From assembly GCF_000737315.1 (NCBI RefSeq), contig NZ_JMCB01000028.1, positions 62,001-126,000 on the forward strand: DNA of 64,000 nt, read 5' to 3'. Position 1 is the first letter of the stretch, and each line of letters begins with the position of its first letter. Shown piece after piece: positions 10,218 to 55,071 of this stretch. Origin of the DNA: Hyalangium minutum (lineage in GTDB: Bacteria; Myxococcota; Myxococcia; Myxococcales; Myxococcaceae). The notes below the pieces were generated by a model. The model was not told the origin of the DNA. It saw only the letters and a program-made list of their open reading frames with translations, and made no database searches. The position numbers and the translations under genes were made by a program.

Positions 10218-10237
10218 GCCGGTTCAAACAAACCCAC

Positions 10238-10774: not shown

Positions 10775-10808
10775 AGCTGTCCTGTCCCTCCGGAAACGCT
10801 TCCTGGGC

Positions 10809-11366: not shown

Positions 11367-11379
11367 GGAGGGCCCGGGC

Positions 11380-12699: not shown

Positions 12700-12701
12700 C
12701 T

Positions 12702-13445
12702 TCAGTCCCCCCCGCCGAACGACATCTGGAACTGGCGGAACAGGTAGAAGCCCAGCACCAGCAGCGTGATGAAGAGGAGCACCGCCGCCACCACCTGCGC
12801 CTTGTTCGACCCGGCGGGCGGGGGCGCCGCCTTGAAGGCCACGGGCGAGGCGGAGGCCACTCGCACCACCTCGTCCCGCCCCCGCTGCGCGTAGAGATCA
12901 TCCGGCGCCTGCGCCAGCCGGAGACGGTACAGGCGGCCCGCCGCGGCCAGCTCGCCCCGCCCCAGCGCCAGCGACACCAGCCGGTCATGCGCGTCGCGAT
13001 CGTCCCACCGCTCCAGCACCGACAGCCACGCGGCCCGCAGCTCCTCGGACGGCCGCTGCTCGTTGGGATCGAAGTTCGAGTACACCAGCCCGCACGCGGC
13101 GCACGACTCCGCGCCCTCCTTGCGCACCGCGATGCACTTGGGACAGAAGCCCGGAGGCACCGCGAACGGATCCTCCGAGCGCGCCAGCGCCGCCGCCTCG
13201 CGCACCCGCTCCTCCGAGGGCCGCAGCGCCACCACCTTCAGCGCCGGCGCGGTGTTGCTCCGAGGCGCGGGGACCGCGGCAGGGGACTCGGCGTTCGTCT
13301 CCGCCACGGCCGCCACCAGCGCCTCCTCGGGGCGCGCACGCGTCTCCTGGCCACAGCGCGCGCAGGTGATCACCAGCACGTTCAGCTCCACCCGGAAGGC
13401 CGCCGGGGGCGCGAGCCGCTCGCACGCATCGCAGAGGTACCTCAT
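12702..13445 (-). CDS. Hypothetical protein with two CxxC pairs/zinc ribbons and C-terminal TM helix
   Basis: MRYLCDACE...CARCG, CPKC...CAACG, C-terminal hydrophobic helix; start overlaps upstream stop (ATGA). Confidence 0.75.
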   Translation of the reverse strand: MRYLCDACERLAPPAAFRVELNVLVITCARCGQETRARPEEALVAAVAETNAESPAAVPAPRSNTAPALKVVALRPSEERVREAAALARSEDPFAVPPGFCPKCIAVRKEGAESCAACGLVYSNFDPNEQRPSEELRAAWLSVLERWDDRDAHDRLVSLALGRGELAAAGRLYRLRLAQAPDDLYAQRGRDEVVRVASASPVAFKAAPPPAGSNKAQVVAAVLLFITLLVLGFYLFRQFQMSFGGGD

Positions 13446-33354: not shown

Positions 33355-33485
33355 GGGCTGCCTGCTCCGTAGGTCTGCACCTAGGAGTAGGAATGCGTGC
33401 GAAACCCAGCAAGGCGCCCATGCCAGGCAGTGCAGCGTTCTGAATGAAGCGCGGCCCCCAGGTGAGCGGGGGCCCTCCTGAATGC

Positions 33486-35474: not shown

Positions 35475-35567
35475 GCTGAGCAAGCGGGTGCCCGGGGGTA
35501 AAAGGAAAGCTAGGTCCGCTGCCCTCCAAACAGAAGGGAGGAGGGAGCGAGACGTGCGCTATCCAAC

Positions 35568-38500
35568 TCAGGCGTTCACCCACAAACGGATGAGTTCGAT
35601 GAGCTTGTCCGTATCCACCGGCTTGGGCAGGTAGTCACTGGCGCCAGCCGCCATACACTTCTCCCGGTCGTCCTTCAGGGCCTTGGCGGTGACGGCGATG
35701 ATGGGGAGCCGGGACAGCCGCAAGTCCTGTCGGATGGCCCTCATGGTCTCGTAGCCGTCCATCTCCGGCATCATGATGTCCATCAGCACCACGTCCACGT
35801 CGGGCTGCTTCTTGAGCGACTCGATGGCTGCCCGGCCATTCTCCGCGAAGGAGACCTGCAGGCCGTGGTTCTCCAGGACGCTGGTGAGCGCGAAGATGTT
35901 GCGCATGTCGTCGTCCACGACGAGCACCTTGCGGCCGGCCAGGTCTCCATTGTGGTTGCCGTCTCTCTCGGCCAGCGCCTGACGGGCCCGGGGTGGCAGG
36001 TTCTGGTCCAGGCGGTGCAGGAAGAGCGCCGTGTCCCCCAGGAGCTGGTCCGGGCTCTTGGGCCCACTCTTGAGGATGACGCTGCCGGTGTAGCGCTTGA
36101 GGCGCGCCTCGTCCTTGGACGTCAGCTCCTTGCCGGTGTAGACGACGATGGGCAAGTCCCTGAAGCGCTGCTGCGTCTTCACCTCCTCCACCAGCTTCAC
36201 GCCGTCCATGTCCGGCAGCAGCAGGTCGATGACGAGGCAGTCGAACTCCCCCTTCTCCAGGGAGCGCAGGGCCTCCTGGCCCGAGGGCACCGCCGCCACC
36301 GCCACGTCGTCGCCCTCGCCCAGCAGCTTGGAGAGGGTGTCGCGCTGCACGTCGTCGTCCTCGACGATGAGCAGCCGCCGCTCCTTGCGCTCCAGGAAGC
36401 GGGCCAGCTGTCCAAAGACGAGCTCCAGGCCCTCCTTGCTCACGGGCTTGGTGAGGTAGCCGAACGCGCCCTGGGTGTTGCCCTGGTGCTTGTCCATCAC
36501 GCTGATGATGTGGACGGGGATGTGGCGCGTGCGGGGGTTGCGCTTGAGGCGCTCCAGCACGCTCCAGCCGTCCACCACCGGCAGCTGGATGTCCAGGGTG
36601 ATGGCGTGCGGCAGGTACTCGTTGGCCATGGAGAGGCCGCTGTCGCCGCGGCTGGCCACCAGGACCTTGAAGCCCTTCTCGCGGGCCATCTGCGCCATGA
36701 TGCGGGCGAACTTCAGGTCATCCTCGATGATGAGGAGGACGTGGTCCCCCTCGCGGATGTGCTCCCGGTCATCCTCCACCGCGAGCGGCCCCAGCACCAT
36801 GTCCGCCGGGGGCGGCAGCGCCGCGTCCAGCACGTGCCCGTTGTCCGCCACGGGCGGGGGTGTCGGGAAGTTCGCCATGGGCGGGGGCAGTTCCTCCCGC
36901 TCCGAGCGGACGGACTCCGATGAGGCCGGGCGGACCACTACCGGGGACGCCGAGCGGCCCGAGGACACCGGGCTGAGCGGCATGGGCGGCGTGGACGGCG
37001 TGGACGGCGGCTTGGACGAGGACGGCGTGCTGCCCTCATCCTCGGGCCCCACGTACTCGGGCGGCATGTACAGCGTGAAGGTGCTGCCCTTGCCCGGCTC
37101 GCTGTCCACGTGGATCTCTCCCCCCAGCAGCTTGGCGATCTCGCGCGAGATGGACAGGCCCAGGCCGGTGCCACCGTACTTGCGCGCGGTGGAGCCGTCC
37201 GCCTGCTGGAACGCCTCGAAGATGAGCTTCTGCTTGTCCTTGGGGATGCCGATGCCGGTGTCCGTCACCGCGAAGGCGATGACGCGCTTGGCCTTGCGCA
37301 ACACCTCGTGGTCCAGCCGGACGTTCTTCTCCGCCGGCTTCACCACCATCTTCACGCTCCCGGAGTCGGTGAACTTGAAGGCGTTGGAGAGCAGGTTCTT
37401 GAGGATCTGCTGCAGCCGCTGCGGATCCGTGCGGATGGTGCGCGGCGTGTTGGGCGCCAGCTCCACGGTGAACGTCAGGTTCTTCTGGTCGGCCACCGGG
37501 CGGAACGAGCGGTCCACGAACTGGTTGAGCTCGGTCAGGAGGATGTCCCGAGGCTCCACCTGCATCTTGCCGGCCTCTACCTTGGACAGGTCGAGGATCT
37601 CGTTGATGAGGCTGAGCAAGTCCCCGCCGCTGGCGTAGATGGTGTTGGCGTACTCCACCTGCTTGCCGCTGAGGTTGCCGTCCTTGTTGTCGGACAGGAG
37701 CTTGGCGAGGATGAGCAGCGAGTTGAGCGGGGTGCGCAGCTCGTGGCTCATGTTGGCCAGGAACTCGCTCTTGTACTTGGAGATGATGGTGAGCTGCTCG
37801 GCCTTCTCCTCCAGGCTGGCGCGGGCCAGCTCCACCTCGCGGTTCTTCTCCTCGACGGCGGTGTTCTGCTCCTTGAGCTGCTTGGCTTTCTCTTCCAGCT
37901 CGAGCGCCTGGGCCTCCAGCTCCACGTTGGTGCGCTTGAGCTCGTCCTGCTGCTGGGTGAGCTCCTTGGACTTGCTCTGCAGCTCCTGAGTGATGCTCTG
38001 CGACTGCTGGAGCAGCTCCTCGGTGCGCATGTTGGCCATGATCATGTTCAGCACCACGCCAATGCTCTCGGTGAGCTGATCCAGGAAGATCTGGTGGATG
38101 GCGCTGAACGGGTGGAAGCTGGCCAGCTCAATCACGGCCTTCACCTCGCCCTCGAAGAGGACGGGCAGGACGATGATGTTGAGCGGGGTGGACTCGCCCA
38201 GGCCGGACGAGATGGTGATGTAGTCCGCCGGCACCCGGGTGAGCAGGATGGTCTTCTTCTCCAAGGCGCACTGGCCGACCAGGCCCTCGCCGAGGCGGAA
38301 GCGGTTGGCGACGTTCTTGCGCTCACGGTAGGCGTAGGTGCTGGTGAGCTTGAGGACGGGCTGGGGGCCCTCCTGCTCCGCCAGGAAGAAGGCGCCGTGG
38401 TGGGCGCCGACCAGCGGCGTCAGCTCGCTCATGATGAGGCGGCTGACGGCCTCGAGGTTCTTCTGGCCCTGCATCATGCCGGAGAACTTCGCCAGGTTCG

Positions 38501-41500
38501 TCTTGAGCCAGTCCTGCTCCTGGTTCTTCTGCGTGGTCTCACGCAGGTTGTAGATCATCTGGTTGATGTTGTCCTTCAGCGCGGCCACTTCGCCCTCGGC
38601 GACGACCGTGATGCTGCGGGTCAGGTCGCCCTTGGTCACCGCGGTGGCCACATCGGAGATGGCGCGCAGCTGAGAGGTGAGCGTGCCGGCCAGCTGGTTC
38701 ACGTTGTCCGTGAGCTGGCGCCACGTGCCGCGAGCGCCGGGCACGCGGGCCTGGCCGCCCAGCTTTCCTTCGATACCCACCTCGCGGGCCACCGTCGTCA
38801 CCTGCTCGGCGAAGGTGCCCAGCGTGTCCGTCATGCTGTTGATGGTCTCCGCGAGCGCGGCGACCTCGCCCTTGGCATCCACCACCAGCTTCTGGCCCAG
38901 GTCACCATTGGCGACGGCCGTCACCACCTTGACGATGCCTCGCACCTGCGTGGTGAGGTTGGACGCCATGAAGTTCACGTTGTCCGTGAGGTCCTTCCAC
39001 GTGCCCGCGACACCGGGCACACGGGCCTGGCCGCCCAGCTTCCCCTCGACGCCCACTTCACGGGCCACCGTGGAGACCTGCTCGGCGAAGGTGCCCAGCG
39101 TGTCGGTCATGTTGTTGATGGTCTCCGCGAGCGCGGCGACCTCGCCCTTGGCGTCCACCACCAGCTTCTGCTTCAGGTCGCCATTGGCGACCGCGGTCAC
39201 CACCTTGACGATGCCGCGCACCTGAGTCGTCAGGTTGCGGGCCATGCTGTTCACGTTGTCCGTGAGGTCCTTCCAGGTGCCGGACACGCCGCGCACTTCG
39301 GCCTGGCCGCCCAGCTTTCCTTCCGTACCCACTTCCTTGGCGACGCGGGTCACTTCCGAGGCAAACGAGTTCAGCTGATCCACCATCGTGTTGATGGTGT
39401 TCTTCAGCTCCAGAATCTCGCCCTTCACGTCGACGGTGATCTTCTTGGACAGGTCGCCGTTGGCCACCGCCGTGGTCACCAGGGCGATGTTGCGCACCTG
39501 GGCGGTGAGGTTGGAGGCCATGGAGTTCACGTTGTCCGTGAGGTTCTTCCACGTGCCGGCGACTCCCGGCACCTCGGCCTGGCCGCCCAGCTTTCCTTCC
39601 GTACCCACTTCCTTGGCGACGCGCGTCACTTCCGAGGCGAAGGCGCGCAGCTGATCCACCATCGTGTTGATGGTGCTCTTCAGCTCCAGGATTTCGCCGC
39701 GGGCCTCGACCGAGATCTTCTGCGACAGGTCGCCGTTCGCGACGGCCGTCGTGACCTTGGCGATGTTGCGCACCTGGTCCGTCAGGTTGCCGGCGAGGAC
39801 GTTCACGTTGTCCGTCAGGTCCTTCCACACACCGGACACGCCCTTCACGTCGGCCTGGCCGCCCAGCTTTCCTTCCGTGCCCACTTCCTTGGCGACGCGG
39901 GTCACTTCCGAGGCGAACGCGCGCAGCTGGTCCACCATCGTGTTGATGGTGTTCTTCAGCTCCAGCACCTCGCCCTTCACGCTGACGGTGATCTTCTGGG
40001 ACAGGTCACCATTGGCGACGGCGGTCGTCACCTTGGCGATGTTGCGCACCTGGTCCGTCAGGTTGCCGGTCAGGGCGTTCACGTTGTCCGTCAGGTCCTT
40101 CCAGACGCCGGACACGCCCTTCACCTCGGCCTGGCCGCCCAGCTTGCCCTCGGTACCCACTTCCTTGGCGACGCGGGTCACTTCCGAGGCGAACGCGCGG
40201 AGCTGATCCACCATCGTGTTGATGGTGTCCTTCAGCTGGAGCACCTCGCCCTTCGCATCCACCGTGATCTTCTTGGACAGGTCGCCGTTGGCGACGGCCG
40301 TGGAGACCTCGGCGATGTTTCGCACCTGGGCGGTGAGGTTGTTGGCCAGCAGGTTCACGTTGTTCGTGAGGTCCTTCCACGTGCCGGCGACGCCCGGCAC
40401 CTCGGCCTGGGCGCCCAGCTTCCCTTCCACACCCACCGTGCGGGCGACATCCGTCACCTGCTGCGCGAAGATGGAGAGCGTCTGGGTCATCGCGTTGATC
40501 GTGTCCGCGAGGGCGGCAATCTCACCCTTCGCTTCCACGATCAGCTTCTGGCTCAGGTCACCGTTGGCGACGGCCGTCACCACCTTGACGATGCCGCGCA
40601 CCTGCGTGGTGAGGTTGGAGGCCATGAAGTTCACGTTGTCCGTGAGGTCCTTCCACACACCGGACACTCCGGGCACCACGGCCTGGCCGCCCAGCTTTCC
40701 TTCCGTACCCACTTCCTTGGCGACGCGGGTCACTTCCGAGGCGAAGGCGCGCAGCTGATCCACCATCGTGTTGATGGTGTTCTTCAGCTCCATCACCTCG
40801 CCCTTCGCGTCGACGGTGATCTTGCGGGACAGGTCACCCTTGGCGACCGCCGTCGTCACCTCGGCGATGTTACGAACCTGGTCGGTCAGGTTGTTCGCGA
40901 GCAGGTTCACGTTGTTCGTGAGGTCCTTCCACGTACCGGCCACACCGGGCACCACGGCCTGGGCACCCAGCTTGCCCTCGACGCCCACCGTGCGGGCCAC
41001 GTCGGTCACCTGCTGCGCGAAGATGGAGAGCGTCTCCGTCATCGCGTTGATGGTGTCGGCCAGCTCGGCCACCTCACCCTTGGCGTCCACCTTCAGGCGC
41101 TGGGTCAGGTCGCCGTTGGCGACCGCAGTCACCACCTTGGCGATGCCTCGCACCTGGGTGGTGAGGTTGGAGGCCATGATGTTCACGTTGTCCGTGAGGT
41201 CCTTCCACGTACCGGCAACGCCCTTCACCTCGGCCTGACCACCCAGCTTGCCGTGCGTACCCACCTCGCGAGCGACGCGGGTCACCTCGGCGGCGAAGCT
41301 GTTGAGCTGGTCCACCATCGTGTTGATGGTGTTCTTCAGCTCCAGCACCTCGCCGCGAGCGTCGACGGAGATCTTCTTGGACAGGTCACCCTTCGCGACC
41401 GCCGTCGTCACCAAGGCGATGTTTCGCACCTGGGTGGTGAGGTTGGAGGCCATGAAGTTCACGTTGTCCGTGAGGTCCTTCCACGTACCGGCAACGCCCT

Positions 41501-43451
41501 TCACCTCGGCCTGACCGCCCAGCTTGCCGTCCGTACCCACTTCCTTGGCGACGCGCGTCACTTCGGCGGCGAACGAGTTGAGCTGGTCCACCATCGTGTT
41601 GATGGTGTTCTTCAGCTCCAGCACCTCGCCCTTCACGTCCACGGTGATCTTCTTGGACAGGTCACCCTTGGCCACCGAGGTCGTCACCTCGGCGATGTTT
41701 CGCACCTGGGCGGTGAGGTTGTTCGCCATCAGGTTCACGTTGTCCGTGAGGTCCTTCCACGTCCCTGCGGCACCGGGCACCTGCGCCTGCGCACCCAGCT
41801 TGCCCTCGACACCCACCGTGCGGGCGACGCTGGTCACCTGCTGGGCGAAGACGTTCAGGGTGTCCGTCATGTTGTTCAGCGTGGCGCCCAGGGCCGCAAT
41901 CTCGCCCTGCGACGGCACCTGCAGCTTCTGGCTCAGGTCACCATTGGCGACGGCCGTCACCACCTTGACGATGCCGCGCACCTGGGTGGTGAGGTTGGAG
42001 GCCATGAAGTTCACGTTGTCCGTGAGGTCCTTCCACACACCGGACACGCCCTTCACCTCGGCCTGGCCACCCAGCTTGCCCTCGGTGCCCACTTCCTTGG
42101 CGACGCGGGTCACCTCGGCGGCGAAGCTGTTGAGCTGGTCCACCATCGTGTTGATGGTGTTCTTCAGCTCCAGCACCTCGCCCTTGGCGTCCACCGTGAT
42201 CTTCCGGGACAGGTCGCCCCGAGCTACCGCCGTGGAGACCTCCGCGATGTTTCGAACTTGCGTGGTGAGGTTGGAGGCCATGAAGTTCACGTTGTCCGTG
42301 AGGTCCTTCCACGTACCGGCAACGCCCTTCACATCGGCCTGGCCACCCAGCTTGCCGTCGCTGCCCACTTCCTTCGCGACGCGCGTCACTTCGGCGGCGA
42401 ACGAGTTCAGCTGATCCACCATCGTGTTGATGGTGTCCTTCAGCTGGAGCACCTCGCCCTTGGCGTCCACCGTGATCTTCTTGGACAGGTCACCCTTGGC
42501 CACCGCCGTGGACACCTCGGCGATGTTGCGCACCTGGGCCGTCAGGTTGCTGGCCATGATGTTCACGTTGTCCGTGAGGTCCTTCCACGTACCCGCGACA
42601 CCCTTCACATCGGCCTGGCCACCCAGCTTGCCGTCGCTGCCCACTTCCTTCGCGACGCGCGTCACTTCCGAGGCGAATGCGCGGAGCTGGTCCACCATCG
42701 TGTTCACGGTGGTACCGATGCGGAGGAACTCGCCCTTCACCGACTGGCCGTCGATCTCGAGGGCCATCTTCTGGGTCAGGTCGCCCTCGGCCACCGCCAC
42801 CAGCACGCGGGCCACTTCCGTGGTCGGCAGCACCAGGTCGCCGATCAGCGCGTTGATGGAGTTGACGCTGGTGGCCCAGCCCCCGCGCACGTCTCCGAGG
42901 TTGACGCGCTCACCCATGCGGCCCTCGCGGCCGACCACGCGCTCGACGCGGACCATCTCATCCGTGAAGGTGGCGTTGCGGCCCACCAGCGCGTTGAAGG
43001 CCTGGGCGATCTCGTCCAGCACCGGGTTGCCCGAGGCCTCCGGCAGCCGGACGCTGAAGTCACCGGACTCGGCGGACAGGAGGGCCGTCAGCAGCGGATA
43101 GAGCGGCTCGCCCGGCTTGACCCGCCGCGAAGCTCCCAGCTGGGTACCCCCGATGACGCCCCTGCCGTGGCCATCGCCGTTGCGCTTGGTGCCGTTGCCG
43201 TTGCGCTTGCCATGAGGGCTCGCGGCGGACTCGGCCGCCAGCTCAGCGACAGGCTTGTCCTCGGCCAGCCGGGCCCGGACCCGGTTGCCGGGCTTGGAAC
43301 CGGCCGGGGGAGTCTCGCCTCCAGCGGCGGGTTCCTTACGGCGGGCACCGCGCTTCTTGCCATCGGAGGGTGAGTTGTCGTTCGAGTCCAAGGAGATGAA
43401 CCTCAGCTGAAAATGAAAAAGACGCGCCTCCACGAAGGGGCGCGCGCTCAA
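35568..43451 (-). CDS. Giant poly-HAMP hybrid histidine kinase (NIK1/Os-1/OsaA-like): poly-HAMP, GAF, HisKA, HATPase, three REC
   Basis: 15 GKLG(G/A)QA 92-aa units plus one degenerate unit, [16 protein letters not shown], three receiver domains; true start may be TTG 43391. Confidence 0.93.
38560..42960 (-). repeat. Intragenic 276-bp tandem repeat (92-aa poly-HAMP units)
   Basis: Recurrent GTTCACGTTGTCCGTGAGGTCCTTCCAC blocks at 276-bp period. Confidence 0.92.
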
Positions 43452-43593: not shown

Positions 43594-44478
43594 TCAGGGC
43601 CTCGGAGCCGTGCACGGAAGTCCGTCGCAGCCCTGGACGTAGAGCGCCAGCCCGGAGAGCCGCCGTGCGGGCGTCCGGAAGCGGTGGGGCGCCTCAGCCC
43701 GCTCCCCCGTCCTGAGATCCAGCGTGAGCGCTTGCCCCTGTCCCGGCCCACAGGCGAGCAGGACGCGCTCAGGCGTGTCCAGCCACCAGAGGACCTCGAC
43801 CTGGCAGGGGGCCTCGGCGCGAAGGGGGGTGAGGGTGCGCGCCTCGTAGGCCACCACCCCGCCGCTCACCACCACGGCCGCCACAGCTCCGCCCGGGCCT
43901 ACGGTGAGTGCCCCCACTGCGGGCAGCCGAGCCTGCCCCAGCACCTCCCCCTGGGGGGAGATGGAGAGCAACTGGCCCTCGGCGTCCAGGGCGATCACCC
44001 CCGCTGCATGGCCGGCGAGGGCCACGGGGGCAAAGTCCCCCACGGGCAGGAGCTGATCCGCCTCCTGGCGCAGCAGGTGCTCGCCTGTCGCCACCCAGAG
44101 CCGCCCGTCACCATCGAAGGTGATGGCAGCGGCGCCGGGCGCGGCGAACACGGTGGCAGGGCCCTCCTTGCGGCACAGGGCCACGGCGCGAGCCCCAAAC
44201 GTCGCCGCCCGTGAGGCATCAGGCGCCACGGCCCAGCCCAGCCGGGGGCCCTGGAGCGCCCCCGTGAGACAGTGGTTGAGCGCACCGAAGTGGGGATCCG
44301 TGGTGGGCGAGGAGACGAGGTACGGCAGGCTCGTGGTGGCCACTGCGACGAGGAGGCCGAGGGCTGCGGCGGTGATGAGCGAGAGCGCCCACGAGCGGGG
44401 GGCCAGCGCGCGGGCGAGCCGGCCCCGGAAGCGGAGTCCCCTCCTGCCGGTCGTCAGGATGCCGTCGCGGTCGCGCAA
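43594..44478 (-). CDS. Membrane-anchored hypothetical protein with partial beta-propeller character
   Basis: N-terminal TM (LITAAALGLLVAVA), FDGDGRLWVAT-type blades; start uncertain. Confidence 0.6.
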   Translation of the reverse strand: MRDRDGILTTGRRGLRFRGRLARALAPRSWALSLITAAALGLLVAVATTSLPYLVSSPTTDPHFGALNHCLTGALQGPRLGWAVAPDASRAATFGARAVALCRKEGPATVFAAPGAAAITFDGDGRLWVATGEHLLRQEADQLLPVGDFAPVALAGHAAGVIALDAEGQLLSISPQGEVLGQARLPAVGALTVGPGGAVAAVVVSGGVVAYEARTLTPLRAEAPCQVEVLWWLDTPERVLLACGPGQGQALTLDLRTGERAEAPHRFRTPARRLSGLALYVQGCDGLPCTAPRP

Positions 44479-44567
44479 GGTCAGACCTTGTTATCGAACC
44501 TGGCCCCCTTTCGCACCTCCCCCCGGCCACACGAGGATTGGCCCCAGCCATGCACTGAAGCCTGGGC

Positions 44568-44969
44568 ATGGGTCTCTGGAGGCACATCCGGCGGTTTCTG
44601 TGGGTGGCGGGCATCACCTGCGTGTTGCTGCTGGCCACGGTGGAGTGTCTCTACCGGGCCGCACTCACGCGGCTCCCGCTGCTGCCCTCCAGCGTGAGCG
44701 GAATGGCCGTGCCCACGGTGCTGATGCGTGCCACGTGGGAGGAGGAGGGCCCGGCGGTGCTCCGGGTCCGGAGCCTGATGCCGTGGACGCTGCTCAAGGT
44801 ACTGACGGCGGTGCTCCGCGCGCGCAAGCGGCCCACGTCCTCGCTCGAGGGCTTCGCGCTGGCGAACCACTCGGCCCGCCGCTGGCTCCACCTGCTGGAC
44901 GCCCAGGCCCCGCGGCGCTACCCGGGCTTCGAGATGCTCCTGCCGGGCCGTGAGGTGCTGCGGGCCTGA
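44568..44969 (+). CDS. Hypothetical membrane-anchored protein, possibly a truncated transglycosylase-domain gene
   Basis: N-terminal TM; resembles, from recall, the N-half of myxobacterial transglycosylase-domain proteins; abrupt end. Confidence 0.4.
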   Translation: MGLWRHIRRFLWVAGITCVLLLATVECLYRAALTRLPLLPSSVSGMAVPTVLMRATWEEEGPAVLRVRSLMPWTLLKVLTAVLRARKRPTSSLEGFALANHSARRWLHLLDAQAPRRYPGFEMLLPGREVLRA

Positions 44970-44977
44970 GGAGCGAC

Positions 44978-45202
44978 TCAGGGCTTGCGCGGCTTGGACG
45001 ACTCGGACTTCTGCTGGAGCCGCTCGGAGAAGCGGCTCTTGCCCGTGGGAGGCAGCACCTCCGCCGCGATGCGCTCCCGCTTCGCCTGCGCCAGGGGGCT
45101 GGCCGGATCTCCCTCTTGCGCCTCCTTCTCGTAGCGATCCTGGCCACTGAGGACGCGGCCCACGGCCTGAGATCGAATGGTGCGGCGGTTCGTATCCACC
45201 AT
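44978..45202 (-). CDS. Small hypothetical protein (74 aa)
   Basis: ATG start, high-GC3 codon usage, fills the space between genes. Confidence 0.5.
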   Translation of the reverse strand: MVDTNRRTIRSQAVGRVLSGQDRYEKEAQEGDPASPLAQAKRERIAAEVLPPTGKSRFSERLQQKSESSKPRKP

Positions 45203-45388
45203 GGTGCGGTGCGGACCTCCGAAGAAGAGGGCCCTCTTCTACCGCGAATGGCACGGCCGCGCCTGCAACGGAGGAAGCAGGCCGTCCCCTCCTGAACGGG
45301 ATGCTGGGACTGCGGTCCAGGGCTCTGGCGGCCGCGATCCCGATCCGCCACCCTTCTCCCCCAAGCCGCTTTTTTTGTGTCTATCGCT

Positions 45389-45417
45389 TTGACCCCAATG
45401 GAAAAATGCGCTACTTA
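45389..45417 (+). promoter_or_regulatory. Putative sigma70 promoter of the prenyltransferase fusion gene
   Basis: TTGACC-17 nt-TACTTA preceded by a T-tract. Confidence 0.5.
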
Positions 45418-45538
45418 TCGAATCCATCAAGGCGCACTGCGGCTCATGGAGACCTCAGCACGCCCAGACGCGGTGGGGGGTAGCGAAACGAGAGCACCCG
45501 CACACGTTCGGGGCACGGTTTTCTAGAGAGGGAGCGCA

Positions 45539-47368
45539 ATGAAGAAGGTCTTGGGACATTTGGAGGAGCAGCAACAGGGCTTCGCGGTTTCTCCCTTCGT
45601 GACCTTCTTGATGGACCCGTGTTTCGCGCCGCAAGACCGGCTCCGGTTCTTGCCGTGTGTGGCGCCGCTGATGATGGGCTCCTCGGAGCTGGCCAGCAGC
45701 CTTCAGGGCGAGGACAACCCCGTGGAGACGGGGACGACGCCTCCCGAGAGCCCGTACTGGGCGCCGTTCCTGAAGGATCTGCAGCTGCTGGATCTGCACG
45801 CGTTCTCCGACTTCAACTCGATGCTGCAGTTGCTGTGGGGCGAGAACTGCGCCCCGGTGCGCGAGGTGCTCTACGACTTCATCGCGCTGGCGCGCTCGGC
45901 CACCCCGCTGCGGCGGCAGATCCTTCTCATGGCGCTGCAGTCGGTGGGCCAGGTGGCCTTGATTGCGATGGAGCAGGTGGCGCGCGAGCTGGAGGCCAGC
46001 ACCCGCAAGCACCTGAGGACCGTCGACTCGCTGCGCGGCCAGGTGCAGATGCGGCTGCTGGGCGAGGAGCTCCTCGGCGTGGAGATGACCGCCGAGGAGG
46101 AGCAGCAGGCCCTCCGCGACGTCAACCAGGTGTTCTCGCTGGTGGATGAGCTGACCGACTACCTGCTGGAGCACGTGCAGGAGTGGTTCGCCGGCCAGCA
46201 GAAGCCCTCGCGGCAGGCCATCATGGCCGAGCAGATCGCCAAGATGAGCTTCCGGGACTTCGGCAACACGCGCATCGCCTCGCTGTGCAAGTCGGCCGGC
46301 TTCACCTCGGCGGATACCCAGAAGGTGCAGCAGTACTTCACCTTCATGACGGACTCGTGGAGCTCGCGGCTGGTGGGCGAGCACTCTCCTTGGAAGTCCG
46401 ACATCTCGGACGACCACACCCCCTTCGAGCTCTCCATCGCACTGGAGGGCAGCCGCCCCGAGATTCGCTTCCTCATCGAGGCGCAGAACCACCCCACCAC
46501 CCTGCAGACCAGCTGGGATGACGGGCTGGCGCTCAACGAGCGGCTCAACAAGGAGTTCGGCCTCTCGCTGGACCACTTCAACAAGGTGAAGGACCTGTTC
46601 GAGCCGCACAACCCCCAGGCGCGCTTCTCCCTGTGGCACGCCTTCTGCCTCAAGCCGGACCGGGGCGCGGAGATCAAGGTCTACCTCAACCCGCAGGCGC
46701 GCGGCCCCGAGCACGCCAACGCGATTGTGGAGGAGGCGCTGTCTCGGCTGGGCTTCGCCCATGCGTGGCGCTTCCTGTCCCAGGTGGTGATGAAGCGCGG
46801 CGCCCAAGACCAGGTGCTCTACTTCTCCCTGGACATGGGCGGGCAGGCGGTCTCCCGCGTGAAGATTTACGTGGCGCACCGGGATGCGGCCCCCGAGGAC
46901 ATCGAGGCGGCCATGGCCCAGGCCAAGGAGTATGTGGCTGGCGAGGCGCGGGCCTTCTGCGAGGCCATCCAGGGCGATGACAACAAGTTCTCGGCGCCGC
47001 GCTCGACGCTGACGTGCTGGGCGTTCACCTCGGACGACGACGACAAGCCCTACAGCGCCACGCTGCACTGCCCCATCCGCTGCTACGCGGACAACGACCG
47101 GGATGCGCTGCGCCGCGTCCGCGCGGTGCTCGACCCCAAGAGCCACGCGGTGCTGGACCGGTGCGTGTGGGCACTGGCCAACCGGCCGCTGGAGGCCGGC
47201 GTGGGGCTGATTCAGTGGGCCTCCATGCGGCGCGAAGGTGGCCGGGTGCGCACCACCTTCTACCTGGCCACCGAGGCCTACGGCACCGTGGCGCCTCGCA
47301 AGTCCACCTCGCACCGCGTCCACGTGCCGGACCTGATGAACGCCGAGATCTTCCAGCTCAGCGCTTGA
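45539..47368 (+). CDS. Fusion: degenerate heme-oxygenase-like (AetD-like) domain plus tryptophan dimethylallyltransferase (ABBA/DMATS)
   Basis: C-half SDDHTPFELS, IRFLIE, IKVYLNP, LYFSLD, RVKIY, RTTFYLATEAY; N-half MKKVL...F...D...P.DRL..LPC.A...W..FL.DL.LL helical pattern. Confidence 0.82.
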   Translation: MKKVLGHLEEQQQGFAVSPFVTFLMDPCFAPQDRLRFLPCVAPLMMGSSELASSLQGEDNPVETGTTPPESPYWAPFLKDLQLLDLHAFSDFNSMLQLLWGENCAPVREVLYDFIALARSATPLRRQILLMALQSVGQVALIAMEQVARELEASTRKHLRTVDSLRGQVQMRLLGEELLGVEMTAEEEQQALRDVNQVFSLVDELTDYLLEHVQEWFAGQQKPSRQAIMAEQIAKMSFRDFGNTRIASLCKSAGFTSADTQKVQQYFTFMTDSWSSRLVGEHSPWKSDISDDHTPFELSIALEGSRPEIRFLIEAQNHPTTLQTSWDDGLALNERLNKEFGLSLDHFNKVKDLFEPHNPQARFSLWHAFCLKPDRGAEIKVYLNPQARGPEHANAIVEEALSRLGFAHAWRFLSQVVMKRGAQDQVLYFSLDMGGQAVSRVKIYVAHRDAAPEDIEAAMAQAKEYVAGEARAFCEAIQGDDNKFSAPRSTLTCWAFTSDDDDKPYSATLHCPIRCYADNDRDALRRVRAVLDPKSHAVLDRCVWALANRPLEAGVGLIQWASMRREGGRVRTTFYLATEAYGTVAPRKSTSHRVHVPDLMNAEIFQLSA

Positions 47369-47536
47369 ATGCTCGCCGGGAGCACCTCCTCGCGACGCCC
47401 ACCTGCCGGGTCGGTTCTCAGCATCTCATGATCTGAGAATCCGCCGCACCCGCGGGGGGCTATCGCGTTGTTCCGCTTTTGCGAGGATACTCAGCACGTA
47501 AGGCGCTCGCTCCCGGGCACAGGAGTCATCCCCTTC

Positions 47537-50500
47537 ATGCATATGTCCAGGTTCCCTCTGTCGGCGCTGCTCGCCGCTGTCTGCGCGCTGCTGACTGCCT
47601 GCGGTCAGACCTCCCCTGATACGTCCACTCCCGTCCATCAGGAGTTCGCCCTGCCAGGTTCGGACGGCGATCTGACGCTCTCGGACGGCTTCACCGTGGT
47701 GAATCAGTACGCCGTCCTCGCGGCGGACGCGAGCGCGGGTGCCAGCAGCATCCAGGTGACAGACATCACCCAACTGACGTCGCCCCGGTCGGGCCCGCTG
47801 GAGGGTGGAGATCTCGTCTTCATCATCCAGATGCAGGGCGCCACCATCGACACCTCGAACAGCCCCACGTACGGCGCCATCACCAGCCTCAACAGCGCGG
47901 GCTTCCATGAGTTCGCGGTGGTCCGCCGCGTGGAGGGCAACACCATCCACCTGGCCTGCGCTGGACTGCAGCACAGCTACGCCACCGCGGGCCGGACCCA
48001 GGTGGTGCGCGTGCCGCAGTTCAACAACCTCACCATCGAGAACGGCGCCTTCGTCCAGGCGCGGCCCTGGGACGGGCAGCGCGGCGGCGTCGTGGTGGTG
48101 CACGTCAACGGCGTCACCACGCTGGATGGAACCATCACCACCACCGGCCAGGGCTTCCGGGGAGGCGCCGTCGAGAACGCCTCGCGCACCGCTCCGGCGC
48201 AGGTCACCCTTTATCTCTCGGGCGATGCACGGGATGGCGCCGAGAAGGGCGAGAGCATCGCCGGCGATACCACCGTCTATGACGCCCTGGGCGGACGCTA
48301 TGGCCGCGGTGCCCCAGCCAACGGCGGCGGCGGCGGCAACAGCCACAACGCGGGCGGCGGCGGCGGCGCCAACGGCAACAACGGCCGGCCCTGGAGTGGC
48401 CAGGGCGTCATGAATGCCTCGGTGGCAGGGGCCTCCGCGTGGCAGCTCGATCCGGGCTACATCGCCAATGGCAACGCGCTGACGGACTCCTCCGGTGGCG
48501 GACGCGGCGGCTACAGCGCCGCCATCTCCAACCAGAACGCGCTCACCGTGGGTCCCAACAACGCCGCGTGGGGTGGCGACTACCGCGCGGAGGCCGGCGG
48601 CCTGGGAGGGCGGCCGCTCAACAATGACGTCACCTCTCGGCTGTTCCTCGGCGGTGGTGGCGGCGCGGGCGACGCGAACAACAGCGCGGCGAACCCCGGC
48701 GGCAACGGCGGCGGTCTCGTGTACCTCGTCTCGCCCACCGTGGTGGGCAGTGGAACCATCGAGGCCAACGGCGAAAACGCCGGCAGCACCCTGCCCGCGC
48801 ACAATGATGCGCCGGGCGGCGGCGGCGGTGGCGGCACCGTCGTGGTCCTCAGCGACGACCTGTCGAGCATTGCCGTGGAGGCCTTCGGTGGCCAGGGCGG
48901 CAACCAGCTCTCCATCACCACCGAGGCCGAGGGCCCCGGCGGCGGTGGTGGCGGCGGCTTCATCGCGGTGAGCGCGGGCGCTCCGCCGCTGTTCGCCCAC
49001 GGAGGACTGTCGGGAACCACCGGCTCGTCGTTGCTGACCGAGTTCCCTGCCAACGGCGCCACCTATGGGGCCAGTGGCCAAACGGTGCGCGTCCCCAACC
49101 CGGATCCGTCCTGGCTCACGTGCGCGCCGCTGGATCTCGCGGTGACGATCACCGACGGGCAAACCACCACCCTTCCGGGAGCCACCGTCACCTATACGGT
49201 GACCGTCACCAACGGCGGCCCCTCGAACGCGACGAATGCTCCTGTCTCCGTGCCGCTGCCCACCCAGGCCTCGGGCGGCAGCTGGACGTGCGCGGGCGCT
49301 GGAGGCGCCACCTGTCAGGCGGCCAGTGGCACCGGGGGCATCTCGACGAACGTCTCCGTCCCCGTCGGCGGCACGGTGACCTTCACCTTCACCGTCAACG
49401 TGAGCCTCTCCGCCACCGGCACGCTCGTGGCGACGGCCACCGTCTCCGAACCGGCCACGCTGACGGATGCCAACCTCGCGAACAACACCGCTACCGACAC
49501 GGACACGATCCTCCCCGTGGCGGATCTCTCGGTGACCCTGACGGACTCGGCGGATCCTTCTCCGGAGCGGAGCCCGGTCGTCTACACCGTCCAGGTGGGC
49601 AACGGCGGCCCCAACACCGCCAACTCCGTCACTGTCACGTTCCCGGTCCCGGCCAGCACCACCTTCACCAGCGCGACGGGCGCGGGGTGGAGCTGCTCGC
49701 AGGCCGCGGGCACGGTCACCTGCACCCTTCCGACCCTGGCACCGGGCAACGCCCCGGCCATCGCCATCACCGTGCAGCCCACCATCACCAGCGGGACGAT
49801 CAACGCCTCGGTCTCCGTGAGCTCGCCGACGATCGATCAGGTCCAGGCCAACAACTCCGACACGGAGACCACGGCGATCGTCGCGGTGAACGATGCCCCC
49901 GTGAACACCGTTCCCGGGCCCCAGACCACGGCCGAGGACACCTCGCTCGTCTTCTCCTCCGCGAGGGGCAATGCGCTCTCCATCTTCGACGAGGATGCGG
50001 GCAGCCAGCCCGTCAAGGTGACCCTCACCGTGACGCACGGCACCCTCACCCTGGGCAGCACCGTGGGGCTGAGCTTCTCGGCGGGCGATGGCTCGGTGGA
50101 CGCGACGATGACCTTCACGGGCTCACAGGCCGATATCAACGCCGCGATCGCGAGCGTCACCTACGCTCCGGACGCCAACTACTACGGCAGCGCCACCCTC
50201 ACGATCACCACGGACGACCAGGGCAACACCGGTAGCGGCGGACCGAAGAGTGACACGGACACCGTGGCCATCACCGTCACCCCAGTGAACGATCCGCCCA
50301 CCGCCGTGGATGACGCGGTCACGATGACGACCATTACGACGGCACGGCCCATCGACGTGCTGGCCAATGACTCGGCGGCGCCTGACGACGGAGAGACCCT
50401 CACGGTCATCACCGTGACGCAGGGCAGCCGGGGTGGCACTGTGACCATCATCGAAGGGGGCGCTCGCGTCACCTACCAGCACACGCCCAACTTCAGCGGC

Positions 50501-52828
50501 ATCGAGACCTTCACCTACACCATCAGCGACGGGAAGGGCGGCACGGCGACCGCCACCGTCACGGTCACCGTGCGCGGAGACCGCGATGGCGACGGGCTGC
50601 CGGATGACGACGAGCCGGGCCACGGCACCGACCCGAACAATCCGGACACGGATGGTGACGGCATCCCGGACGGCACCGAAGTCCACACGGGCACCGACCC
50701 GACCAAGCCCGACACCGATGGCGACGGCCTGCCCGACGGCAAGGAGGACGAAAACCACAACGGCGTGGTCGACCCGGGCGAGACCGACCCGCGCAACCCC
50801 GACACCGACGGCGGTGGCTTCAATGATGGGGAAGAGGAGGATCGCGGCACGGATCCGCTGAACCCGAACGACGACGTGGAGCGCCGCGTGGTCGGCAGTG
50901 GCTGCAGCAGCTCGGGCAACAGCGGCCTGACGGGCCTCGCGGGGATGATGCTCGCCCTGGTGTTCCTGACGCGCCGGAGCCGCCCGGCGCTCTCCATGGG
51001 CCGCTCGCGGAGCCTCCGCTCCCTGGTGACGCTCGGAGCCGTGGGGGCGCTGACCGCCTCCGGCGCCTCGTGGGCGCAGGGCACCTCGGCCGCCATCGAC
51101 GTGCAGCAGTTCCGGCCCGCCCCGGGCAAGGCCGACGTGCTCGGCCTGCACAGCCCGGGAGTGCAGGGGCACTTGAACTGGCAAGCAGGGCTCTTCTTCA
51201 ACTACGCCCACGAGCCGCTCGTCGTCATCAACCCGGCCAACGCCGACCGGCTGCAGCACCTGGTGCGCAACCAGCTCGGCTTCGACCTGATCGGCTCCAT
51301 CGGCCTGGGCGAGCGCTTCGAGCTGGGCCTCGTGGCCCCGCTCAAGATCGAGCGCGGTGAGTTCGGCGAGCTGCCCACCGGCAACCTGGAGCAGTCGTGG
51401 AAGGGCGGCCTGGGTGACCTCCGGCTCGTCCCCAAGGTGTTACTTCTAGAACGCGACACCCTGCGGCTGGGGCTCGCGGCGCCGATGGTGATGCCCACGG
51501 CGGGCGCCTCGGAGCTTCAGGGCCAGAAGGGGTTTGGGGTGCAGCCGCGGCTCGCGGCGGACTACGCCTTCGAGAGCGGCACCCGGCTGCTGGCCAACCT
51601 GGGCCTCAACGTGCGCAGCCGCCAGGAGCTGAGCAACCTCTCGGTGGGCAATGAGCTGAGCTACAGCGTGGGCGCCGCCATTCCTTTCGAGGTGAAGGAG
51701 CACCCGTTCACCGGCCTCGCCTCGCTGGGCGGTGCCCTGGGCCTGGGCGCCACGGGCGGAGCCAATGAGGAGGAGCGGCCGCTCGAGTTTCAGGCGGGGC
51801 TCCAGACGCGGGTGAGCAAGTCCATCGTGGCCTCGCTGGGCATGGGCAAGGGCCTCACGCTGGGCTACGGCATGCCCGTGTTCCGCGTGTTCACCGGCTT
51901 CTCGTATGCCTTCGAGCAGCCGCCCCGCCCCAAGGACACGGACGACGACGGCTTCCCCGACATCAGCGACGCCTGCCCCCTCGACGCCGAGGACAAGGAC
52001 GGCTTCCAGGACGAGGACGGCTGCCCGGACCTCGACAATGATCAGGACGGTGTCCCCGACACGGCGGACAAGTGCCCGAACGTGCCCGAGGACAAGGACG
52101 GCTTCCAGGACGAGGACGGCTGCCCCGACCCCGACAATGACGGGGACGGCATCGTGGACGGCCAGGACACGTGCGTGCTGGAGGCCGAGGACAAGGACGG
52201 CTTCCAGGACGAGGACGGCTGCCCGGACCTCGACAATGACCAGGACGGCGTCCCCGACGGCTCGGACAAGTGCCCCAACGCGGCCGAGGACAAGGACGGC
52301 TTCCAGGACGAGGACGGCTGCCCCGACCCCGACAACGACCGCGATGGCGTGCCCGACGCGGACGACCTGTGCCCCACGGAGCAGGAGACCATCAACGGCG
52401 TGGAGGACGAGGACGGCTGCCCGGACAAGGGCGAGAGCAAGGTCCAGGTCACCAGCCAGAAGATCGTCATCAAGGAGAAGGTCTACTTCGACACCAACAA
52501 GGACGTGGTGCTGGAGCGCTCCTTCCCGCTGCTGAAGCAGGTGGCCCTGGTGCTCAAGGCCAACCCGCAGCTGAAGAAGGTCCGCATCGAGGGCCACACC
52601 GATGACCGGGCGGATGACGCCTTCAACCTGGACCTGTCCCAACGCCGCGCGGGCAGCGTGCTCAAGTACCTGGTGGAGGTTGCAGGCATCGACCCGAACC
52701 GCCTCATCTCCGAGGGCTTCGGCGAGACACGCCCGGTGGACACCAACAAGACGGCCGCGGGCCGCGAGAACAACCGCCGCGTCGAGTTCGTCATCATCGA
52801 AGTCGAAGGCGACAGCTCGCCGCAGTGA
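47537..52828 (+). CDS. Large surface lipoprotein/adhesin fused to an OmpA-family (TraB-like) module via an internal MYXO-CTERM-like motif
   Basis: LTAC lipobox, Gly-rich domain, two DUF11-like repeats, cadherin-like VND.P repeats, DxDGDG repeats, GSGCSSS-TM-RRSR, barrel, TSP3 repeats, IEGHTD...LSQRRA...NRRVEF. Confidence 0.88.
51934..52430 (+). repeat. Five TSP type-3 Ca-binding repeats (99-bp period)
   Basis: GAGGACAAGGACGGCTTCCAGGACGAGGACGGCTGCCC at 51989, 52088, 52187 and 52286, plus a divergent fifth unit. Confidence 0.9.
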
Positions 52829-53811: not shown

Positions 53812-55071
53812 ATGCCGACCCGGAAGCCCGAGGACTCCACCGCGCCCGTCGCGCCGCCCTCCGACGAAGAGCAGCGAAGGCTCGCCCAGAGCAACAATGC
53901 CTTCGCCGTGGAGCTCTGGCGCCAGGTGAATGGAAGTCCCGGCAACCTCGCGCTCTCGCCCGCGAGCATCACCCTGGCGCTCGCGATGGCCTGGGGCGGT
54001 GCCCGCGGTGAGACCGCGAGCGAGATGAAGCAGGTGCTCCACTTCCAGGGCAGCGCCGATGAAGTCATGGCCTCGGCGGGCCAGCTGCTCCAGGCGTGGA
54101 ACACGAGCACCGGGAACACCGTGCTGCGCGTGGTGAACCGGCTGTTCGGCTCGAAGAGCTACACCTTCGAGCAGCCCTACCTGGACAAGACGAAGGCCAC
54201 CTTCAACGCCCCGCTCGAGCCGGTGGACTTCGACAACGACATCGAGGCCACGCGCGAGTCCATCAACGCCTGGGTGGCGCGGCAGACGGAGGACCGCATC
54301 CAGGGCCTGCTGCCCGAGCGGAGCCTGAGGCCCCGTCTGACGAAGCTCGTGCTCGTCAATGCGGTCTACTTCAAGGCGGTCTGGGCCCACCTCTTCTCGG
54401 AGGACCAGACCGTGAGCGAGCCGTTCTTCGTCACGTCCACGGTGAAGAAGGACGCGGACCTGATGCGCCGCACGGGCAGCTACGCCTATGCCGAGCAGGA
54501 TGGCGTGAAGGTGCTGGAGCTCCCCTATCGGGACGGGGCGTGGTCGATGATCTTCGCCCTGCCGGACGCAGTGGATGGGCTCGCGGAGGTGGAGCGGAAC
54601 CTGTCGAGCGAGGTGCTCAACGACTGGGTCACCGCGCTGCGCACCGAGACCGTGAACGTCGCGCTGCCGCGCTTCGAGGTCAACCCGGAGGCGCCAGTGG
54701 AGCTGGGAGACGCCCTGATGAACCTGGGCATGGCGCGGGCCTTCGACGCGCAGCGGGCGGACTTCACGGCGATGGCGAACCCTCCCAACTCCAGCGAGCG
54801 CCTCCATATCAGCAAGGTCTTCCACAAGGCCTTCGTGAAGGTGAACGAGCAGGGCACCGAGGCCGCCGCCGCCACCGCCGTCGTGATGATGGCGCGGAGT
54901 GCGATGGGCCGGCAGCGCGAGCCTAAGGACTTCCGCGCGGACCACCCGTTCCTCTTCTTCCTGCGCGACAAGGCCTCGGGGATGATCCTCTTCATGGGGC
55001 GCGTCTCCGAGCCGCCGGTCTCCACCGCTCCCAAGCGGAGTGAGCCCAACCTCGCTGGACGGGGGGAATGA
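53812..55071 (+). CDS. Serpin (serine protease inhibitor)
   Basis: NNAFA, NLALSPASI, LVLVNAVYFKAVW, HKAFVKVNEQGTEAAAAT, FRADHPFLFFLRD..SG.ILFMGRV. Confidence 0.95.
   Translation: MPTRKPEDSTAPVAPPSDEEQRRLAQSNNAFAVELWRQVNGSPGNLALSPASITLALAMAWGGARGETASEMKQVLHFQGSADEVMASAGQLLQAWNTSTGNTVLRVVNRLFGSKSYTFEQPYLDKTKATFNAPLEPVDFDNDIEATRESINAWVARQTEDRIQGLLPERSLRPRLTKLVLVNAVYFKAVWAHLFSEDQTVSEPFFVTSTVKKDADLMRRTGSYAYAEQDGVKVLELPYRDGAWSMIFALPDAVDGLAEVERNLSSEVLNDWVTALRTETVNVALPRFEVNPEAPVELGDALMNLGMARAFDAQRADFTAMANPPNSSERLHISKVFHKAFVKVNEQGTEAAAATAVVMMARSAMGRQREPKDFRADHPFLFFLRDKASGMILFMGRVSEPPVSTAPKRSEPNLAGRGE

Follow-up and report, generated by a model that had tools for sequence, protein, structure and literature searches.

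AetD, the nitrile synthase of aetokthonotoxin biosynthesis (8ji2, 8twn), and SktA, a skatole synthase, are stand-alone enzymes that work with halogenases, and AetD-type enzymes have been recognized only in 2023–2025. AetD was found to be a dimer in structural work, and two structural papers assigned H79, H172 and E176 as the ligands of Fe1 and D76, E140, E176 and H179 as those of Fe2. The study of SktA described the AetD homologues as essentially all of unknown function and did not mention prenyltransferases. The solved bacterial DMATS enzymes are in turn single-domain proteins of 360–400 aa. We analyzed a 64,000-nt stretch of the Hyalangium minutum genome (GCF_000737315.1, contig NZ_JMCB01000028.1, positions 62,001–126,000; hereafter the window, numbered from its first letter) and describe here a gene whose 609-aa product joins these two lineages, with an AetD-like domain that has been disarmed at its diiron site standing in front of a DMATS-type prenyltransferase domain. 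Our literature search returned nothing that links AetD or heme-oxygenase-like (HO-like) oxidases to prenyltransferase fusions, or Hyalangium to prenyl-indoles. Both constituent families are known, and the novelty lies in variation on them: their fusion, the disarming of the oxidase part and the types of gene cluster found around the relatives.

The open reading frame (ORF) is intact, begins with ATG and is given the same limits in the public assembly GCA_000737315.1 (contig JMCB01000028.1), and its GC content at third codon positions (GC3), 0.94, is like that of the neighboring genes and indicates native codon usage. Public annotation calls the product only a “tryptophan dimethylallyltransferase family protein”, and the second domain is invisible there because databases label these proteins as DMATS-family only. 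An earlier note on this gene, made from the letters of the sequence (the original prediction), had proposed both domains, and every peptide string that it quoted is present in the translation, including TPPESPYW (aa 66–74), MALQS (aa 131–135) and DSLRGQVQMR (aa 163–172) in the N-terminal part and DDHTPFELS (aa 291–299), IRF, KVY, YFSLD, RVKIY and RTTFY..EAY in the C-terminal part. The two-domain architecture was borne out by PDB sequence matches, Foldseek and profile–profile alignment.

Pfam and NCBIfam models had no match in the N-terminal domain (N-domain), and its homology came first from the PDB sequence search only, in which aa 1–210 matched the AetD chains 8ji2, 8zvg and 8twn at E 8e-16 (phmmer, all PDB, 177,635 sequences), a match far above chance for a search of that size. 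Two profiles, built from 14 N-domains and from 11 intact AetD-like proteins, aligned with each other over 217 columns at a probability of 100% and E 4.9e-52 (hhalign). Modeled alone with AlphaFold2 (AF2), the N-domain was all-helical (pLDDT 75.6, pTM 0.73), and in the Foldseek comparison with AetD that the original prediction had suggested, the best 21 PDB matches of the model were all AetD (probability 1.0, TM 0.68–0.77), followed by TenA, HamA, PolF, BesC, UndA, PqqC and heme oxygenase at E ~0.1 or weaker and TM ≤ 0.56. With AetD and SktA the N-domain shares the seven-helix bundle (TM 0.70–0.77), and the structural residues R34, L35, P39, C40, W74 (=W80), D80-L81, W100, R108 and P123 are common to it and the AetD family. 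The searches and the model together identify the N-domain as a true AetD homologue with an HO-like seven-helix bundle, and the AetD-like reading given in the original prediction was right.

In contrast to AetD and SktA, the N-domain lacks five of the six iron ligands as well as the core-helix-3 motif, and its substrate contacts are replaced. D76, H79 and E140 of AetD correspond to E70, Y73 and Q134 in the window protein, and profile–profile alignment and hmmalign place R166, Q170 and L173 at H172, E176 and H179. The pairwise phmmer alignment instead puts L165, V169 and R172 at the last three positions, MAFFT opens a 16-residue gap at the core-helix-3 ligands, and none of these four alignments of the window N-domain recovered an H-x3-E-x2-H motif. 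The exchange of D76 for E70 is conservative and leaves the sole ligand-type residue of the six. The H-x3-E-x2-H motif is also absent throughout the 43 full-length members of the family, the query and 42 relatives from databases. Among the 42 relatives position 166 is Arg in 37 and position 173 is mostly Pro, 34 have Glu or Asp at position 70, 27 have His at position 73 (Tyr in the window copy), and position 134 is Glu, His, Gln or Lys. These alignments indicate that the core-helix-3 ligands were lost family-wide and that two more were lost in the window copy. Because the motif is missing from all 43 members and an Arg is conserved at the H172 position, the alignments mark the N-domain as a pseudo-oxidase; the loss of metal ligands claimed by the original prediction holds in every alignment, with the refinement that E70 remains of ligand type. 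The N-domain profile found only 355 relatives in a representative library of 1.84 billion proteins, and a canonical ligand set (DHEHEH, EHEHEH or DHEHDH) was present in 115 of the ~160 AetD-like domains counted in the best 150 of these 355. All six ligands are likewise kept by the reversed-order fusions and by the stand-alone AetD-like homologues that neighbor the fusion in related loci, both described below.

That the N-domain is still an enzyme, using a mononuclear metal at E/D70-H73-E/H134(-D/E170) or metal-free chemistry as in TenA/PqqC-type proteins, seems to us very improbable. Many relatives do keep E/D70, His73, Glu/His134 and Asp/Glu170, and the distant matches to the fold include HO-like proteins that bind mononuclear iron (HamA) or no metal at all (TenA, PqqC), but the window copy, with Y73, Q134 and Q170, could offer at most one carboxylate, no retained position is invariant, and the Arg that the family conserves in place of H172 suggests a site that is filled and does not bind metal.

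The substrate contacts bear on another possibility, namely that the dead domain binds tryptophan or the prenylated product and serves as a sensor or an allosteric switch, as the original prediction had it, or as a substrate-delivery cup. The helical bundle that forms the substrate cavity of AetD is predicted to be retained, AetD can bind its substrate without iron according to a structural paper, and relatives in one of the two clades of the family (clade B) retain F44 and F48, the residues with which AetD clamps or stacks on the indole. However, AetD holds the amino-acid end of its substrate by Fe1, H79, H172 and Y167, in place of which the window copy has Y73, R166 (or L165) and T161 (or R160), and the indole contacts F44, F48, I146 and S214 have become L44, S48, A140 and V202. 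We consider a ligand-binding role unlikely on this balance.

The C-terminal domain (C-domain), by comparison with solved enzymes, looks like a working prenyltransferase. It scored 55.8 bits against the Pfam model PF11991 (Trp_DMAT; cut-off 25), and in the PDB sequence search solved bacterial DMATS enzymes matched aa 235–596 at E 2e-47 to 3e-29, among them 6-DMATS (6zry/6zrx, 2e-47), PriB (5inj, 3e-43), IptA (7w8u, 3e-41) and 5-DMATS (2e-36), with TleC, MpnD and CymD as further matches. The domain was modeled mostly at pLDDT 80–95 and superposed on 6-DMATS (6zry) at E 1e-25, TM (target) 0.91 and a root-mean-square deviation (rmsd) of 2.3 Å, which is the alpha-beta-beta-alpha barrel. With 6-DMATS of Micromonospora, PriB, IptA and the 5-DMATS SCO7467 (6zrz) it shares ~30% identity, the same barrel (TM ~0.9, rmsd 2.2–2.8 Å), the Glu of DDHTP-x-E and the Arg/Lys/Tyr diphosphate cage, and it differs from these single-domain enzymes in carrying the additional 220-aa N-terminal domain.

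E297 in DDHTPFELS aligns with DDHTPVEFS of 6-DMATS and PriB and corresponds to the catalytic Glu106 of TleC, and the spacing of the diphosphate and shield residues lies within 1–2 residues of R119, K187, R248, Y252, R378 and Y382 in that enzyme. E297, R310, K380, R440, K442, Y444, R571 and Y575 were invariant in 23 homologues, in which H510, occupying one shield-Tyr position as in PriB, was nearly invariant (≥ 90%). The intact catalytic set that the original prediction had described was confirmed by the PDB alignments, this conservation and the TleC spacing. Among solved enzymes the C6-prenylating 6-DMATS, IptA and PriB are closest, and the C5 enzyme comes next. Most likely the C-domain uses dimethylallyl diphosphate (DMAPP) to place a dimethylallyl group on the indole ring of L-tryptophan, or on that of a very similar indole substrate.

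About 50 full-length relatives of 603–618 aa were found, all from Hyalangium, Archangiaceae or “Myxococcaceae” genomes and from metagenomes, with Hyalangium providing all of the nearest named ones. They fall into two paralogous clades, A (65–90% identical to the query) and B (~50%), and six genomes carry one of each. The closest DMATS domains outside the family are 53–61% identical and form three groups. The first consists of stand-alone DMATS proteins, one of which (P0063) overlaps by 4 nt with the gene of a 236-aa AetD-like protein in which the ligand set is complete (E 5e-45 against AetD). The second comprises 608-aa fusions in the opposite order, DMATS followed by an AetD-like domain, from Archangium lipolyticum, A. 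violaceum and metagenomes, which keep all six ligands together with F48, H72 and Y167. The third contains more distant DMATS–AetD-like and DMATS–PF14518 fusions.

The Archangium fusions (WP_257453784, WP_204226527), metagenomic fusions (P0057, P0059, P0103) and an unfused operon (loci L019/L020) draw on the same two lineages as the window protein and belong to the same bacterial family; their DMATS parts are 53–57% identical to the window C-domain, their AetD-like parts are sister to the dead N-domains, and PilZ and “hyp141” neighbors (see below) recur beside them. They differ in having the domain order reversed, or the genes separate, and the ligand and contact residues intact, and the Archangium-type proteins look, from these residues, truly bifunctional. 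In distance-based neighbor-joining trees, which carry no support values, the dead N-domains grouped as a single clade, set off by a long stem, and its sister was the group of intact AetD-like proteins from myxobacteria; the DMATS domains of the family nested with the unfused operon (P0063 and its 236-aa AetD-like partner) and the Archangium DMATS–AetD-like fusions. In the simplest history suggested by these trees, a myxobacterial pair of DMATS and AetD-like genes was rearranged or duplicated once, and the metal site was lost afterwards. Because the intact fusions have the opposite order, the dead N-domain is not simply the same fusion in decay, and the trees place the dead-domain fusion in a separate lineage of single origin. 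The original prediction had envisaged an enzyme that once coupled tryptophan prenylation to oxidation and had called for a survey for fusions with intact ligands; such fusions and the unfused operon do exist as relatives and agree with it in spirit, although the reversed order and the separate single-origin lineage do not fit the ancestry as it was stated.

Several other architectures came to light in the same searches. A third fusion type of 588–630 aa (P0067, P0075, P0079, P0080, P0083, P0092, P0096) places DMATS before a PF14518 (Haem_oxygenas_2) heme-oxygenase-like diiron oxidase (HDO) domain, which has typical E...H / E..H motifs and is unrelated in sequence to the AetD lineage. Nine proteins of 500–630 aa (P0152, P0177, P0178, P0198, P0205, P0212, P0237, P0241, P0242) carry two AetD-like copies in tandem, the first with complete or nearly complete ligands (P0177, DHEHEA) and the second degenerate (LHEHHL, LHEHVV, LHE--- and similar); by their ligand sets they show independently that intact and disarmed domains can occur as a pair. 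An 891-aa protein from Logan assemblies (P0143/P0252) has an intact AetD-like domain fused to a Pyr_redox_3/FMO-like flavoprotein, and it may be an oxidase joined to a flavin-dependent tryptophan-modifying enzyme. Among members of the fusion family itself, the H. versicolor clade-A protein P0017 is annotated at 564 aa, and its public start call truncates the N-domain, because the ORF at 10001–11824 of locus L008 encodes 608 aa with the conserved MKRV start; one ENA contig (P0003/P0008) splits the gene into frameshifted pieces of 202 and 402 aa, through an assembly error or as a pseudogene.

Gene clusters surround most members of the family. A PilZ gene of 100–114 aa lies directly upstream in 13 of the 14 other distinct loci with upstream sequence available. 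Immediately downstream of the fusion stands a tryptophanase gene in L013, L015 (= L002), L017 and L018 and an intact stand-alone AetD-like gene in L009 and L014, and such an AetD-like gene also occurs slightly further off in L001 and L011, the distances ranging from 0.1 to 1.4 kb over these last four loci. Tailoring genes accompany the fusion in L001, L002/L015, L009, L011, L013, L014, L017 and L018, and the relatives' clusters also hold a conserved protein of ~200 aa, often a P450, and a styrene/indole-monooxygenase-family flavoprotein. The AetD-like oxidase (L009, 11948–12622(−); L014, 9859–10533(−)) and the tryptophanase (L013, L015, L017 and L018, ~11850–13250(−)) occupy the same slot on the opposite strand, and by position they look like interchangeable solutions to processing of the tryptophan side chain.

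The aet cluster encodes a ring-decorating enzyme, the tryptophanase AetE, AetD and the P450 AetB. The relatives' clusters resemble it in combining a tryptophan-decorating enzyme with a tryptophanase or an AetD-like oxidase and with a P450. They differ in that they would prenylate rather than halogenate, that tryptophanase and AetD-like oxidase are alternatives rather than present together, and that a styrene/indole-monooxygenase-type flavoprotein and PilZ are added.

None of these genes is near the window copy: no tryptophanase, P450, flavin (Smoa-type) monooxygenase, AetD-like partner oxidase or PilZ gene was found anywhere in the 64 kb. The original prediction had called the gene stand-alone, with no biosynthetic neighbors, which is accurate for this copy and does not extend to the family, since the solitary state is peculiar to it and a few close orthologues and most members are clustered. 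In the locus of the 88% identical orthologue (L023), PilZ-CAP-PilZ lies upstream, and the giant surface-protein gene that follows the fusion in the window has a 78% identical orthologue in the corresponding downstream place. Because L023 retains both, this synteny places the window copy in a subclade that left the cluster, of which it alone also lost PilZ. Horizontal transfer was considered for the orphan position and rejected, since the GC3 of the gene matches that of its neighbors and the downstream surface-protein gene is syntenic in L023.

Two small genes recur beyond the fusion family. A PilZ-domain gene, encoding a cyclic di-GMP (c-di-GMP) receptor, stands beside the DMATS/AetD-like pair in three architectures; it is upstream of the dead fusion in both clades, sometimes duplicated (L001, 9518–9823; L002, 9126–9470; L007–L018, ~9100–9700; L023, 860–1198 and 1887–2240), and in the unfused operon it takes the form of a downstream 295-aa coiled-coil-PilZ protein (L019/L020, 9927–10814). 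A link between c-di-GMP signaling and the prenyl-indole pathway is possible from this recurrence. A 141-aa protein, hyp141 (L001, 11897–12322; L011, 11927–12349; L003, 4480–4905), is encoded downstream of the dead-HDO–DMATS fusion and, at 73% identity, upstream of the Archangium-type DMATS–AetD-like fusion. Neither hyp141 nor hyp198/201 (the latter ~200 aa; L002, 13473–14078) had a Pfam match, and hyp198/201 gave a weak H-NOX-like PDB match at E 0.06.

The ratio of nonsynonymous to synonymous substitution rates (dN/dS) in the N-domain was 0.27–0.73, below 1 (0.36–0.73 in pairs with the window copy), against 0.07–0.32 in the C-domain among orthologues; the strong GC3 bias probably deflates dS and hence inflates these ratios. 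The ORFs of all 15 genomic homologues examined were intact, 24 N-domain residues are invariant across clades that share just 35–41% identity in this domain, and the motifs L165-R166 and E180-L-D are specific to the dead family. These comparisons indicate that the N-domain is under relaxed, that is weaker, but real purifying selection. One could nevertheless regard the window gene as a drifting orphan in which the N-domain is a relic, kept only because its deletion would destabilize or mis-start the prenyltransferase. The higher dN/dS of the N-domain, the further decay at ligand positions in the window copy and its loss of all cluster partners, even the otherwise universal PilZ neighbor, point that way. 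Ratios below 1 that are probably inflated, the persistence of the domain in 15 of 15 genomic copies and ~50 database relatives from two paralogous clades, and the invariant residues and dead-family motifs tell against it, and we hold the relic explanation to be somewhat less probable still than ligand binding.

We favor, with slightly better than even confidence, an active tryptophan prenyltransferase that carries a non-catalytic AetD-derived module in a structural, dimerization or docking role, and we rank the rivals in the order of ligand sensor, relic and alternative catalysis. The C-domain would transfer the dimethylallyl group of DMAPP to tryptophan, and the expected product of the window orphan would be dimethylallyl-tryptophan. 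The N-domain would descend from an AetD-type diiron tryptophan oxidase of the kind that accompanies DMATS in related myxobacteria, and without a diiron site it would be unable to perform O2 chemistry of the AetD/SktA type, because only E70 of the six ligands remains ligand-like and the conserved Arg166 sits at the H172 position. The module may help to organize the attached prenyltransferase, or it may hold that enzyme to the tailoring enzymes acting downstream. In the relatives, dimethylallyl-tryptophan would be converted into a prenyl-indole by the tryptophanase or, alternatively, into a nitrile or a SktA-like skatole-type product by the intact AetD-like oxidase, with the P450 and the flavoprotein acting afterwards. 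A structural, dimerization or docking role is favored because AetD is a dimer, because in the nine unrelated tandem AetD-like proteins a degenerate copy follows an intact one, and because intact AetD-like genes neighbor the fusion in four loci.

Several observations weigh against this interpretation. The N-domain evolves 2–4 times faster than the C-domain, and the window copy is among the most degenerate at the ligands (Y73, Q134), where many relatives keep His and Glu/His. The tryptophanase-type clusters have no obvious AetD-type partner to dock to, there is no partner oxidase in the window, and a search with the intact AetD-like profile gave no named match from the source organism, which is weak evidence as that search is word-indexed and most of its matches are unnamed. 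On the side of the prenyltransferase, the narrower DMATS subfamily model TIGR03429 (NCBIfam) scored 100.1 bits, below its cut-off of 163.85. The AF2 model of the full protein reached a mean pLDDT of 77.3 and a pTM of 0.61, and its output (pLDDT, pTM and secondary structure) carries no interdomain information.

A more speculative proposal, to which we give a low probability, goes beyond the favored role of the module. The dead domain would be a pseudo-subunit that pairs through the AetD dimer interface with an intact oxidase or with itself, coupling prenylation to oxidation or cleavage of the tryptophan side chain. The Hyalangium and Archangium loci would then make an unknown family of prenylated indole nitriles or skatole-/indole-type metabolites, possibly tied to c-di-GMP through PilZ.

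The features of the gene and its surroundings are listed in Table 1. A promoter of its own resembling sigma-70 sites, as claimed in the original prediction, did not appear in a scan of 44900–47600 for the sigma-70 consensus and intrinsic terminators, which returned 0 sites; what speaks for it is a block conserved in seven orthologous (clade-A) upstream regions, followed by a conserved G-rich/GAAAC stretch and then the Shine-Dalgarno sequence. This block is a plausible candidate for a promoter or operator, in which the −35 element would be good and the −10 element poor. An Rfam scan of 44400–47600 at E ≤ 1 found nothing, neither riboswitch nor leader. At the other end of the gene, the disordered tail of the protein closes with a conserved motif, which reads ...VHVPD..NAEIFQLSA in clade A, while many members of clade B have ..QLSA or ..RLNA; it may serve as a tag for docking or degradation. 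Between the fusion gene and the upstream poly-HAMP kinase gene on the opposite strand lie three small ORFs of unknown function, and the downstream surface-protein gene is followed by a hypothetical gene, the serpin, a metallophosphoesterase and an SDR gene. The serpin is also syntenic with the fusion gene in the contig of an 84% identical orthologue (L006, 3773–4993).

Table 1 Features of the fusion gene and neighboring genes in the window
Feature	Position	Strand	Basis or remark
Whole coding sequence, 609 aa + stop: dead AetD-like domain, linker, DMATS prenyltransferase, short tail	45539..47368	+	Intact ORF
AetD-like heme-oxygenase-like domain, aa 1–~220, all-helical, diiron site dismantled	45539..46198	+	phmmer, hhalign, AF2/Foldseek
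E70..Y73 codons, at AetD core-helix-1 ligands D76 and H79; ESPY replaces DAKH	45746..45757	+	Alignments
Q134 codon, at AetD Fe2 ligand E140	45938..45940	+	Alignments
R166..L173 codons, remodeled core helix 3; AetD has H172-x3-E176-x2-H179	46034..46057	+	Alignments
Interdomain linker, aa ~221–234	46199..46240	+	Helical in AF2 model; alignments to solved DMATS structures start at aa 235
DMATS-type alpha-beta-beta-alpha prenyltransferase, aa 235–590; Glu297; R310, K380, R440, K442, Y444, H510, R571, Y575	46241..47308	+	Pfam PF11991, PDB, Foldseek
Low-confidence C-terminal tail, aa 591–609, ends in clade-conserved ...NAEIFQLSA	47309..47365	+	pLDDT < 50 for aa 595–609; tail comparison
Conserved block TTTGACC-N17-TACTTA, AGAAAAATGCG in spacer, ~115–150 nt before ATG	45388..45425	+	Alignment of seven clade-A upstream regions
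Shine-Dalgarno-like GAGAGGGAG, ends 4 nt before ATG	45526..45534	+	Sequence; GAGGGAG conserved among orthologues
Cyanophycin synthetase-like gene: Cyanophycin_syn N-terminal, ATP-grasp and Mur ligase domains	30703-33963	−	
PAS/response-regulator histidine kinase adjoining the cyanophycin synthetase-like gene	33486-35483		
Hybrid histidine kinase, 2627 aa: at least 16 HAMP/HAMP_2 repeats, GAF, HisKA/HATPase, three receiver domains	35568-43451	−	Divergent
Predicted surface protein, 1786 aa: DUF11, CARDB, cadherin-like, Big_9, bacterial TSP3 repeats, C-terminal OmpA	47468-52828	+	
Bacterial serpin	53812-55071	+	Pfam E 2.5e-111

The family reveals a myxobacterial AetD lineage that is partnered with a prenyltransferase rather than a halogenase and that occurs as an unfused operon, as a bifunctional-looking fusion and as a disarmed fusion, three forms that provide a natural series on what an HO-like scaffold does after metal loss. 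Around its relatives, the fusion points to small gene clusters that would make as yet undescribed prenylated indoles, and the loci give concrete starting points for mining Hyalangium and Archangium genomes for natural products of the prenylated indole, nitrile or skatole type.

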